DNA from: Octopus sinensis
Taxonomy: Eukaryota
Direction: 5' to 3'
Assembly (NCBI RefSeq): GCF_006345805.1
Contig: NW_021825267.1
Span: 1-16,108, forward strand
DNA length: 16,108 bases
Shown: positions 3,049 to 6,175 of the stretch, one piece after another
Layout: each line of letters opens with the position of its first letter
Position numbering within the stretch: the stretch's first letter is position 1
Program-made: the position numbers and the translations under genes
The notes under the pieces: model-generated
What the model was told of the DNA's origin: nothing
Databases searched by the model: none
What the model saw: only the letters and a program-made list of their open reading frames with translations

Positions 3049-3102
3049 GCTTACAATTGTTTCTGCTATAGCAGGATAATATCTTATAGCTTCATCAGAG
3101 GC
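3049..3102 (-). ncRNA. Minimal type I hammerhead ribozyme motif (HHR-1)
   Basis: Minus strand: GCCT CTGATGA A GCTATA [14 nt] TATAGC A GAAA C AATT G TA|AGC. Both core motifs are exact, stem II is 6 bp, stem III is the palindrome ACAATTGT and the cleavage triplet is GUA. Stem I is only 2-3 bp and the stem II closing position is A/A. Confidence 0.72.
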
Positions 3103-3130
3103 TTGACATTATTAGGGAGAGTTGCATTTT

Positions 3131-3190
3131 CACATACATACATACATACATACATACATACATACATACATACATACATATATATATATA
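3131..3190. repeat. (TACA)n/(TA)n microsatellite
   Basis: Directly visible. Confidence 0.95.
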
Positions 3191-3562
3191 TTCTTCCACC
3201 GTCTAGGCTTAAAAAAGCCCTCAATGTTGGTTTCCTTGTCCTGTTTTTATTCTTTATGTGTACTATATTTTTATTTGTATTGCTTTTACGTCCTGTTCTT
3301 GTCACTTTTTTTCTTCTTTTACCCCTCTGCAAAAGAATTTTATTTAATTCATTTGCAGGAAGTCTGCTTCGGCCGGATCGTGTTCTGCCTTACCTTCGAA
3401 ACACGCATTGAGTCGAACCAGGGGCAGCTGATGAAGGGGAATATTCCTTGTATTGGTTTCTTGTACTCTGTTTTTTCGTTGTTAAAAAAGTCCGTTTCCT
3501 TGTTTTGTTTTTATGTTTCGTTTCTCGTTGTGTTTTACGTTTATCTGTGGTGCCCTGTACTC

Positions 3563-3785
3563 ATATATATATACATATATATATATTTATAATATATATA
3601 TAATATATATATATATATATATATATATATATATATAATATATATAATATATATATATATATATATATATATATATATTACATGTATATATACATATAGA
3701 TGTAGGTATGTACATATATGTATGTATGCATATGTTTTATTTGTTAAATTGTTATTATATATATATATATATATATATATATATG
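3563..3785. repeat. (TA)n-rich microsatellite tract
   Basis: Directly visible. Confidence 0.95.
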
Positions 3786-4148
3786 TAAGTTCAGCAAATT
3801 TAGATTCATATGAATATGGTACTTAAGGTAAAGATACCAGAATTTGGTATGGTATTATCCATATAAATCAAATGTAGTGATTATAATCAAAATAAGCAAC
3901 AAGGATATCCAAGGTAGAGTAGTACAATCGTTTCATGCTACTTCATTTCATTAAGCACTGTAAGTATTACATCAGTTTTAAAATGTCGAGCACTCGTCAT
4001 CCACATATAGAATTTTAAAAATTAACTAGACAATGTTCGTTTTGATACTTATATTTGCCAACATTACAAAGAGGATAGATATATAGACAGAGAGGTTAAT
4101 TTCATCATTAAGAACATGGTAGTAGAAGGTCCTTCTCCATGGGTAGAT

Positions 4149-4212
4149 TTTTTTATCACTCTCTCTCTCTCTCTCTCTCTCTCTCTATATATATATATAT
4201 AATATATATATA
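4149..4212. repeat. (CT)n-(TA)n microsatellite
   Basis: Directly visible. Confidence 0.95.
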
Positions 4213-4240
4213 CTTTATTTTAAGCAGCAGAAAATTCAAC

Positions 4241-4287
4241 AAAATCTGTTACTCTGAGTTTCTCGTTGCCGTTCATCAGACAGTTTT
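4241..4287 (-). ncRNA. Minimal type I hammerhead ribozyme motif (HHR-2)
   Basis: Minus strand: AAAA CTGT CTGATGA A CG GCAA CG A GAAA CTC A GAG TA|ACAG A TTTT. Stem I is 4 bp (plus 4 after a bulge), the core is exact, stem II is 2 bp with a GNRA loop, stem III is ACTC-A-GAGT and the triplet is GUA. AATAAA and a (TA)n tract follow downstream. Confidence 0.85.
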
Positions 4288-4350
4288 TATGTGTTTACTC
4301 CGGTATATAATATATATAATATATATATATATATATATATATATATATAT

Positions 4351-4445
4351 GTGTGGCTTAATAGTTAGGATGTTGCTCTAGTGGTCGTGATTTTCAATTC
4401 CTAGACCAGGTGATATGTTGTGATCTTGGGTAGAAACATTTCGTC
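4351..4445 (+). mobile_element. Degenerate tRNA-derived SINE 5' fragment
   Basis: A-box-like TGGCTTAATAG, B-box-like TTTCAATTCC, then GTTGTGATCTTGGG resembling the CORE-like segment of 5839-5979. Confidence 0.45.
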
Positions 4446-4769
4446 TACCTGACCGTGCACCTGGTCAGGTGTTGTCGTTTTGATGGAGAGAGTGAATTAG
4501 TGTATGGCACGAACATTTGATCATATAAACAAATCATTCGTGCAGGTCGTTGAACAAAAGCTGAACGCTCATACATTGTCTTCGACGGTAGAGCCCATTA
4601 TACACACACGCACAGACACACACACACACATACGCGCACACACAGACACACACACACTCACACACAATATAATTTATACATTTATATAACTGAAATGTTT
4701 TTTACACACTTTACCTTAAGACAGAATATCTATTCTATTGTTTAATTTCTAGAAACGTGCACGGTATAT

Positions 4770-5101
4770 ACACATATACATACATGCTTATACATATATA
4801 TCTATATATATTATGTATTTTATATTTCTCTCTCTATATATATGTATATATATATATGTGTGTGTGTGTGTGTCTATATATATAATATATATATATATAT
4901 AATATATTTACTGATATATATATATAGTATATGTATATATATAAACTTATCTAGATATATACTTATATACCTGTATATATATACATATATATATATATAT
5001 ATATATATATATTATATATAATATATATATATATATATATATATTATATATATATATATATATATATATATATATATATATATATACATATATATATATA
5101 T
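4770..5101. repeat. (TA)n-rich microsatellite tract
   Basis: Directly visible. Confidence 0.95.
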
Positions 5102-5392
5102 AAGGGTTTGTGTCGAATTAAATCATGTTTGTGTGTCACTAGGTAACCAGATTGGAATTTCGGAATCCTTGAATCACAAATTTTCTTAATACATTTGCCG
5201 TTGGGGTTTTTACGCGTGCATGTGAAATATATCTTTTGTTTGAAATTGTAAATTTTAACACATTTTCAAAATAAAGTATTCACACGCACACACATATATG
5301 CACACACATATACTCACACGCATATGCGTATATATATATATACTCACAAACATATGCATCGAATGCATGTGTGTTTATATGCGAGCGAATGT

Positions 5393-5452
5393 ATATGTAT
5401 GTAGAAATAGATATGTATGTAGAAATAGATAATGTACTGAAATAGATAATGT
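5393..5452. repeat. Short 17-18-bp minisatellite (ATATGTATGTAGAAATAG x2 plus degenerate units)
   Basis: Exact units at 5393-5410 and 5411-5428. Confidence 0.85.
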
Positions 5453-5838
5453 TGTGTCACACGCACTCTTCGTCACACATGCGGCGAAGAATACATACAT
5501 ATTACAGTTATACATTCAGGTGTATACACATACATTGTTTCAAACAAAGAGTATATACACTCTTATGTGTGCTAATTACTTTATATACGCGTATATGTGT
5601 GTGTGCGTTGCGTACGTTTTTGCGTATGTCTGTCTACGTTACTGTTCCATATGTATTATGTTGTAGATGTATCTTCGTTCATCAACAATTTGGGATAAAA
5701 CGGTACACTTAACTGCGAACTATGTTAAATTTATCACGAATTGATCTGTCATAACACTGTTCAGCAATGAATGTAGATTCTGCTAATTATATTTTTCAAA
5801 TATTTTTCTTTATTATTTACTGATCGTATGTCATTAAG

Positions 5839-5979
5839 TGAAGGTGCGTGGCTTAGTGGTTAGGAAATAGGGCTCCCATTTGCAAGGTTGTAAGTTCGAT
5901 TCCTGGCGTTGTGCTGTGTCCTTGAACAAAATACTTTATTTCACGTTTCTCCACTCAGCTGGCAAAAAGAAAATGAGTA
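5839..5979 (+). mobile_element. tRNA-derived SINE, 5' part with CORE-like domain
   Basis: A box TGGCTTAGTGG (5849-5859), B box AGTTCGATTCC (5893-5903), then CTGTGTCCTTGAACAAAATACTT resembling the CORE-SINE motif. Confidence 0.72.
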
Positions 5980-6105
5980 TTTAAAAACATAAGAGGCATC
6001 CATCATAGGACTCCTTGCACGCTAGAGAGAACATTTAAATTCTAAACCACTATTAGGGATAAAACTTCGAAGGGAATGAAAAATAAAAACATTAACCATC
6101 TAACT

Positions 6106-6175
6106 CCTGGACCATGGTTTCAGACTTCTCTCTAGCAAATAAAATAATTTGCTAGGCGAAGACTTCTTCAGCAGG
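6106..6175 (-). ncRNA. Type I hammerhead ribozyme motif with long stem II (HHR-3)
   Basis: Minus strand: CCTG CTGAAGA AGTCTTCGC-CTAGCAAAT TATTTT ATTTGCTAG-AGAGAAGTCT GAAA C CATG G TC|CAGG. Stem I is a perfect 4 bp, stem II is about 16 bp, stem III is the palindrome ACCATGGT and the triplet is the canonical GUC. Confidence 0.9.

Follow-up and report, generated by a model that had tools for sequence, protein, structure and literature searches.

Three minimal type I hammerhead ribozyme motifs in a repeat-rich 16.1-kb window and their probable origin from Penelope-like elements

Introduction

Minimal hammerhead ribozymes occur in the pseudo-long terminal repeats (pseudo-LTRs) of Penelope-like elements (PLEs), and most of their genomic copies are solitary motifs that have been ascribed to truncated PLEs (PMC4209133). 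These metazoan type I motifs are characterised by a helix I that is short and open, a likewise short helix III that is palindromic, and an odd nucleotide where helix II begins (PMC4209133). The ribozymes lie near the 3′ ends of PLEs, whose insertion is biased to microsatellites (PMC8557442). Animal retrozymes derive from PLE pseudo-LTRs (bioRxiv 10.64898/2026.07.22.740005), and the non-LTR retrozymes reported by Cervera and de la Pena in 2020 are 150–450-nt tandem repeats with a canonical hammerhead, that is, a 6-bp helix I, a 4-bp helix II, and tertiary loop contacts (PMC7229834). Here, we analysed a 16,108-nt stretch of Octopus sinensis DNA (contig NW_021825267.1, positions 1 to 16,108; hereafter the window), in which a preliminary description had noticed three hammerhead motifs, called HH-A, HH-B, and HH-C below.

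Dispersed solitary minimal hammerheads have been known in animal genomes since 2014, and this locus adds three instances. We regard them, with a probability of about 0.6, as the remains of three independent, strongly 5′-truncated 3′ ends of PLEs or PLE-derived elements, each from a different family. For annotation, the three motifs of ~50–80 nt would then be recorded as PLE-type minimal hammerheads and the islands around them as retroelement debris. The window has a GC content of ~33%, is full of microsatellites and short interspersed elements (SINEs), and contains neither a long open reading frame (ORF) nor a tRNA gene. It is therefore taken to be intergenic or intronic animal DNA.

Three hammerhead motifs on the minus strand

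We searched both strands of the window with a descriptor that demanded an exact core, a helix I of at least 2 bp, a helix II of at least 2 bp in which a mismatch at 10.1/11.1 was tolerated, and a helix III with A15.1-U16.1 as its closing pair and a minimum length of 3 bp. Exactly three complete type I motifs were found, all on the minus strand (Table 1). They lie where the preliminary description had placed them, and its three cleavage coordinates proved exact. The order CUGANGA ... GAAA ... UH (H is not G) is exact in each motif, and the helices follow the type I arrangement with an open helix I and hairpins II and III. No type II or type III hammerhead was found on either strand of the window.

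All three motifs have the C15.2-G16.2 pair in helix III. The self-complementarity claimed earlier for this helix is perfect in ACAAUUGU (HH-A) and ACCAUGGU (HH-C), and in ACUCAGAGU (HH-B) it holds around an unpaired central A. As monomers, HH-A and HH-C would each form a helix III of 2 bp with a palindromic tetraloop, and HH-B would form one of 3 bp with a triloop. A helix III of 2–3 bp with a small loop follows the classical design of metazoan type I hammerheads. In every motif, A9 is followed at the base of helix II by an A, and A or U stands opposite it on the 3′ side; this arrangement can be taken for a 1 × 1 internal loop or a pair, or else for a bulge. One step inward from this odd position, a G-C or C-G pair is present in each motif. 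The helix I duplex of HH-B has a calculated energy of −5.8 kcal/mol.

Table 1. Coordinates of the hammerhead motifs, the islands that contain them, and the endonuclease remnant in the window.
Feature	Positions	Strand	Details	Basis
HH-A, minimal type I hammerhead	3108-3042	minus		descriptor match, shuffle and decoy controls
HH-A core	3098-3092	minus	CUGAUGA	
HH-A helix I arms	3100-3099 / 3051-3050	minus	just 2 bp in register	
HH-A helix II	3091-3064	minus	A.A, then GCUAUA/UAUAGC (6 bp), 14-nt loop	
HH-A GAA	3063-3061	minus		
HH-A helix III	3060-3053	minus	ACAAUUGU	
HH-A H17	3052	minus	A	
HH-A predicted cleavage	3052/3051	minus		
HH-A island	3130-2985	minus	~145 nt	sequence, Tandem Repeats Finder (TRF), BLAST against the window
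HH-B, minimal type I hammerhead	4289-4240	minus		descriptor match, shuffle and decoy controls
HH-B core	4279-4273	minus	CUGAUGA	
HH-B helix I	4289-4280 / 4249-4240	minus	ACAG-A-UUUU pairing, 4 + 4 bp flanking an A.A mismatch	
HH-B helix II	4272-4263	minus	A.A, then CG/CG, GCAA tetraloop	
HH-B GAA	4262-4260	minus		
HH-B helix III	4259-4251	minus	ACUCAGAGU	
HH-B H17	4250	minus	A	
HH-B predicted cleavage	4250/4249	minus		
HH-B island	4303-4213	minus	~90 nt	sequence, TRF
HH-C, type I hammerhead	6181-6100	minus		descriptor match, shuffle and decoy controls
HH-C core	6171-6165	minus	CUGAAGA	
HH-C helix I	6175-6172 / 6109-6106	minus	CCUG / CAGG, 4 bp	
HH-C helix II, long	6164-6122	minus	A-U at base, G-C, U.U, CUUC/GAAG, CUAGCAAAU/AUUUGCUAG	
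HH-C GAA	6121-6119	minus		
HH-C helix III	6118-6111	minus	ACCAUGGU	
HH-C H17	6110	minus	C	
HH-C predicted cleavage	6110/6109	minus		
HH-C island	6364-6090	minus	~270 nt	sequence, BLAST against the window
Frameshifted PLE-type GIY-YIG endonuclease remnant	9523-9244	minus		translation, Pfam, HMMER, tblastn

We used 1000 dinucleotide-preserving shuffles of the window as the null. The control against shuffled sequence that had been proposed earlier came out clearly: the shuffles gave a mean of 0.064 matches to the loose descriptor and 0.004 matches with a palindromic helix III, against three observed, and none of them reached three. Because shuffling destroys native repeats and palindromes, we added a decoy control in which the native sequence was kept and the core was permuted. 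The 539 decoy cores of equal composition gave a mean of 0.04 loose matches and none with a palindromic helix III; for the true core, both counts are three. Complete motifs contain three of the five CUGANGA heptamers on the minus strand and neither of the two on the plus strand. These results confirm that the three motifs are genuine and exclude chance.

Two further candidates were rejected. The first, at 4010-3913 on the minus strand, was matched by a relaxed descriptor that allowed one core mismatch, and it was dropped since 0.6 such matches are expected in the shuffles. It lies between HH-A and HH-B and has a mutated core (AUGACGA, with A in place of C3), a helix II of 5 bp, ACGAUUGU, and a helix I of 4 bp; it could be a decayed fourth copy. 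The second, a match to a U3-A8 variant, falls inside microsatellite sequence and was dismissed as chance-level.

Comparison with described hammerheads

The motifs resemble the minimal PLE hammerheads of Cervera and de la Pena (2014, PMC4209133) in several respects. Both are of type I, with a short open helix I and without recognisable contacts between loops 1 and 2, and both combine C15.2-G16.2 with a palindromic helix III/loop 3. The irregular nucleotide right after A9 in the published motifs may have its counterpart in the A found there in the window. The published motifs are mostly dispersed and single, as are those of the window, where a PLE endonuclease (EN) remnant lies close by. However, the published 10.1/11.1 pair is a highly conserved G-C, whereas the window has A.A or A-U. 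The extra nucleotide is a lone 5′ bulge in the published motifs but is matched on the 3′ side of helix II in the window. Helix II of HH-B has 2 bp, compared with the published 6–8 bp, and helix III in the window is not absent but has 2–3 bp and a loop.

The retrozymes described in 2020 (PMC7229834) share with the window a type I hammerhead, an AT-rich non-coding context, and the link to PLE pseudo-LTRs. The window motifs, by contrast, are of the atypical minimal type, and the tandem unit that defines retrozymes was not found here.

The amphibian satellite hammerheads, including the axolotl HHR_Amex, and the Penelope variants of Drosophila virilis have a helix III of 1–2 bp with a palindromic tetraloop, like ACAAUUGU and ACCAUGGU, and their activity depends on dimers. 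They also offer precedents for irregularities of the window motifs, namely a U.U at the base of helix II in HHR_Amex2 (PMC7229834) and a 2-bp helix I in D. virilis. These variants differ from the window loci in forming large homogeneous families for which transcription or cleavage has been demonstrated.

Endonuclease remnant and related Penelope-like elements

The preliminary description had also reported a GIY-YIG remnant on the strand of the motifs, and its presence was borne out (Table 1). Its translated pieces read …LTCSGCQEQYIGQT… / …LRKRMALHRSQ… / …KEPLFITKYRPLLN…, and Pfam GIY-YIG scores it weakly (E = 0.02). A HMMER search of 1.84 billion representatives yielded eight EN relatives with E-values down to 1e-16, and 3/8 of them pass the Pfam GIY-YIG threshold. 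When 55 PLE relatives and neighbouring reverse transcriptase (RT) ORFs were compared with the window by tblastn, it was matched at the EN remnant alone, and no RT remnant was found in the window. A word-indexed protein search with a stitched EN query gave no match, and the ORFs of the window are absent from the records searched.

Positions 9528-9021 of the window have 75% identity to two Logan contigs, L003 and L004. In this family, as in the window, the EN is followed by a 3′ untranslated region (UTR) of ~200 nt and then by a CT-rich repeat; the 3′ UTR of the window copy extends to ~9021. A long CT/GA-rich low-complexity tract (8650-9090) comes directly after it, and an equal transition ends both contigs. 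The tract may be part of the 3′ region of that PLE family or its preferred target.

The EN relatives on long contigs of the ENA are canonical PLEs, in which RVT_1 is followed by HTH_animal and, at the C terminus, by GIY-YIG. Each of these related PLEs (loci L007, L009, and L010) carries a minimal hammerhead on the coding strand, ~120–130 nt past the EN stop codon. In L007, the hammerhead at 8652-8676 has a head-to-head inverted twin at 4860-4836, and L010 has two copies. The motifs of L007 and L010 read CUGAAGA-UCAAUGGA-GAA-ACAUGU-A (short form CUGAAGA-UCAAUGGA-GAAACAUGU-A) and have an 11-bp helix I. The motif of L009 (6728-6760) reads CUGAAGA-U·CUAUGUAGUAG·U-GAA-ACCGGU-U (short form CUGAAGA-UCUAUGUAGUAGU-GAAACCGGU-U). 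In the PLE lineage from which the window remnant comes, minimal hammerheads with a palindromic helix III are thus a feature of the 3′ region.

These hammerheads have the core CUGAAGA in common with HH-C, and in them, as in the window, GAAAC runs on into a palindrome and the base of helix II is short or mismatched. Their palindromes have 6 nt and their helix I up to 11 bp, whereas the palindromes of the window have 8–9 nt; they also lie directly downstream of an intact RT-EN ORF, and the window motifs have no ORF. Helix II has 2 bp and a 4-nt loop in L007 and L010 and a U.U at its base in L009, so that the oddities of HH-A and HH-B are within the range of the lineage. Taken together, the A.A, A-U, and U.U found where helix II begins and the PLE-linked helix II of 2 bp add a small detail on the natural minimum of the ribozyme.

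Each related PLE stops in (TA)n, 50–130 nt after the cleavage site. The window islands run on for 35 nt in HH-B, into (TA)n, for ~60 nt in HH-A, into (CA)n/(TA)n, and for at least 20 nt in HH-C, where a SINE cuts the island off. The distance to a microsatellite-flanked 3′ end in the controls therefore matches that in the islands. Outside the core, BLAST detected no similarity between the islands and the fetched PLE loci. L007 has a third, unrelated minimal hammerhead at 13711-13658, from which it follows that several different motifs within ~16 kb are not unusual near PLEs.

Some features of these loci are of interest in their own right. L007 (4826-8686) and L010 (5030-6673) contain head-to-head inverted PLE pairs whose arms end in an identical hammerhead followed by (TA)n, and one arm of these pairs has an extra stretch of ~35 nt, which agrees in length with the optional PLE ‘tail’ described earlier (PMC11167929). 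Both are clear illustrations of the published PLE insertion architecture. The plus strand of L009 has a second core (6798-6825; CUGAAGA-GCUCAGC-GAAACGCGU-U), which follows the first at a distance of ~40 nt downstream and has no helix I in register; the two could be ribozymes arranged in tandem inside a single pseudo-LTR.

Surroundings of the motifs

Each motif sits in its own short unique island of ~90–270 nt, bounded by microsatellites or SINEs. Upstream of the HH-A island is (ACAT)n (3132-3188); its downstream neighbours are (CA)n/(TA)n (~2955-2990) and part of a SINE (2856-2968). The HH-B island has (TA)n (4304-4350) on one side and (TA)n(CT)n (4159-4215) on the other. The HH-C island is bordered by a SINE (6364-6860) and, at its other end, by the A-rich tail of a tRNA-derived SINE on the plus strand (~5850-6090).

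By BLAST, the sequences on either side of the motifs match neither one another nor any other part of the window. The motifs are therefore not local duplicates, and the earlier statement that they have just the core in common holds. In the region 2800-6500, TRF detected just microsatellites and repeats with a period of at most 30 nt, and no tandem unit of 150–450 nt; thus, there is no retrozyme array.

Viral contigs, GTDB genomes, and JGI metagenomes contain neither the HH-C pattern nor the SINE that is abundant in the window. A 22-mer of HH-B was matched on one JGI contig, in GC-rich bacterial coding sequence without a palindrome after GAAAC, and this match was set aside as chance.

Origin of the motifs

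Under the reading that we favour, three 5′-truncated PLEs or PLE-mobilised non-coding derivatives, one from each of three families, would have inserted separately, each in or beside microsatellite DNA. The last ~90–270 nt of each element would survive, including the hammerhead of its 3′-terminal pseudo-LTR. In an active element, a transcript longer than one unit would carry the motif twice, and the two copies would pair through the palindromic helix III, which implies action as a dimer. The resulting dimeric ribozyme would cut 3′ of H17, possibly aided by the protein of the element itself.

A PLE origin is supported by the PLE-type GIY-YIG remnant on the same strand as the motifs, and the motifs and their surroundings appear to match the published features of PLE and metazoan hammerheads. 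The preliminary description had taken the motifs for relics of different PLE or retrozyme families. The hallmarks of the motifs, the GIY-YIG remnant on their strand, and the like anatomy of related PLEs lend indirect support to this view.

Several observations weigh against a PLE origin. In the tblastn comparison, neither RT nor EN sequence was found beside any of the three motifs. No CUGANGA core occurs in the ~200 nt after the ORF in the family of the EN remnant (L003/L004), so that a link between the remnant and HH-C, 3.1 kb downstream of it on the minus strand, cannot be made. The G-C pair expected at 10.1/11.1 is replaced by A.A in HH-A and HH-B and by A-U in HH-C. Helix I of HH-A has merely 2 bp in register, and its duplex is weak (−2.1 kcal/mol). 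Microsatellites occupy about 1/4 of the region according to TRF, which makes microsatellite neighbours weak evidence. Searches of the viral, GTDB, and JGI contigs retrieved no further copies of the islands. Finally, Rfam cmscan reported no hammerhead family at the gathering score or at E ≤ 10 in the whole window, and slices of ~100 nt at each motif gave no hammerhead match at E ≤ 10.

The Rfam result needs comment, because a scan with Infernal and the Rfam models had been put forward as a check and it did not recover the motifs. Rfam also misses the control hammerheads of L007 and L009, which lie right behind intact PLE ORFs in other genomes. Its negative result is therefore uninformative for the minimal subclass. 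The hammerhead models of Rfam are built on canonical hammerheads, and they are blind to the minimal PLE-type subclass. Genome scans that use Rfam alone will under-report such motifs, which can be recovered by a simple descriptor if shuffles and decoys serve as controls. This failure of Rfam is the sole non-trivial by-product of our analysis.

The common orientation of the motifs is most simply explained as coincidence or as repeated insertion into one microsatellite-rich target. The chance probability that three or four elements are co-oriented is 0.25 or 0.125, respectively, so the reservation made earlier that co-orientation could be due to chance was well founded.

Folding and expected activity

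None of the three motifs adopts the hammerhead in its minimum free energy fold as a monomer, and the z-scores are unremarkable. Such folds are expected for motifs that depend on dimers. In homodimer cofolding, HH-C is the sole motif that forms the intermolecular ACCAUGGU helix and keeps helix II; the HH-A dimer favours another palindrome, which is located in helix II.

The palindromes of helix III differ among HH-A, HH-B, and HH-C, and the motifs are thus not proper dimer partners for one another. The minimal hammerheads of PLEs cleave poorly in vitro (PMC4209133). In one PLE that has been studied, hammerhead activity is assisted by protein, and insertion does not require it (PMC4209133; PMC11167929); RNA-seq showed no ends at the PAc site (PMC11167929). 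The window motifs are probably catalytically feeble as monomers. Because each motif stands alone and the palindromes differ, they are most likely inert relics that self-cleave little, if at all, and that play no part at this locus.

Alternative explanations

The islands may instead be solo monomers of non-LTR retrozymes, that is, non-coding elements that measure ~170–400 nt, bear a type I hammerhead, and are mobilised by PLEs via circular RNA, and not truncated autonomous PLEs. We consider this possible but rather unlikely. There is no coding remnant beside any motif, the HH-C island has the size of a retrozyme, and retrozymes derived from PLE pseudo-LTRs occur as monomers, dimers, and multimers (bioRxiv 10.64898/2026.07.22.740005; PMC7229834), all of which would suit such an origin. 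However, the region has no tandem repeat with a period of 150–450 nt, the islands of HH-A (~145 nt) and HH-B (~90 nt) are below the unit size of retrozymes, and the motifs resemble the atypical minimal PLE variants, not the canonical helix I/II hammerheads of retrozymes. The distinction is partly semantic if retrozymes are themselves derivatives of PLE pseudo-LTRs.

HH-C, possibly with the other motifs, and the GIY-YIG remnant could also belong to one decayed PLE whose 3′ region, at first a few hundred nt long, would have been stretched to ~3 kb by later SINE insertions and microsatellite growth. The common strand and the expected order, with the EN first and the hammerhead downstream, would fit, and the intervening 3.1 kb consists mostly of SINEs (6364-6860, 8133-8558) and microsatellite or low-complexity sequence (6930-7530, 8650-9090). 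Nevertheless, a single copy is improbable: the same EN family lacks a hammerhead core in the ~200 nt past the ORF in L003 and L004, related PLEs have their hammerhead just ~120 nt from the stop codon, ~1 kb of unique sequence is left over without explanation, and three different hammerheads cannot share one element.

Quite different is the proposal that the co-oriented ribozymes act jointly; the preliminary description had suggested that any minus-strand transcript could carry several self-cleavage sites. A host transcript or long non-coding RNA from this strand would then be cut at 6110, 4250, and 3052 into RNAs of ~1.9 kb and ~1.2 kb, which might be circularised. Such a ‘heterologous retrozyme’ would be built from unrelated PLE 3′ ends and might be helped by PLE protein in trans or by intermolecular dimers. 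The motifs are indeed intact and in one orientation within 3.1 kb. However, the monomers do not take the hammerhead fold, the unlike palindromes offer no proper heterodimer, and the DNA between the motifs is microsatellite and SINE debris without an ORF or a conserved feature. Poor cleavage in vitro (PMC4209133) and the missing ends at the PAc site (PMC11167929) also argue against it, and we find this suggestion very hard to maintain.

Least credible of all is that a permissive descriptor matched AT-rich, repeat-rich DNA by chance. In favour of this explanation, the Rfam covariance models report nothing, the descriptor was composed after the candidates had been seen, and its one-core-mismatch version does give chance-level matches. 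However, it is effectively refuted already by the shuffle and decoy controls, and the PLE-linked positive controls are missed by Rfam as well.

Other repeats in the window

A SINE-like unit of ~184 nt occurs in tandem dimers and dispersed, in both orientations, at 8133-8558 (minus), 12515-12885 (plus), 14316-14765 (plus), and 13380-13457. Its copies are 79–94% alike, contain GTTCAAATTCCGCCGAGGTCGAC…GGGGTCGATAAA, and are 82–87% identical to a 543-bp ENA metagenome scaffold (L001). The unit was not found among the viral, GTDB, and JGI contigs.

The second repeat family has a tRNA-like head (frame ‘VFSLNKHSQ…’) and was found at 1877-1909, 6364-6400, 6666-6699, 1696-1786, 2856-2968 (inverted), and 6452-6568. 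Copies of this family flank HH-A (2856-2968) and HH-C (6364 onward). Heads of plus-strand tRNA-derived SINEs adjoin the islands of HH-B (~4345-4600) and HH-C (~5850-6090).

At 10070-10440, ~19 copies of a unit with a period of 19 nt form a tandem array, in which units are up to 96% identical and spurious long ORFs arise on the minus strand. The sub-threshold Rfam matches in the window are miRNA, snoRNA, and CRISPR junk on microsatellites. Among them, mir-297, mir-3149, mir-466, and mir-1277 fall on TA, CA, and TATG tracts (e.g., 15296-15367, 5302-5384, and 6948-7017), and these miRNA-type matches are artefacts of low-complexity hairpins.

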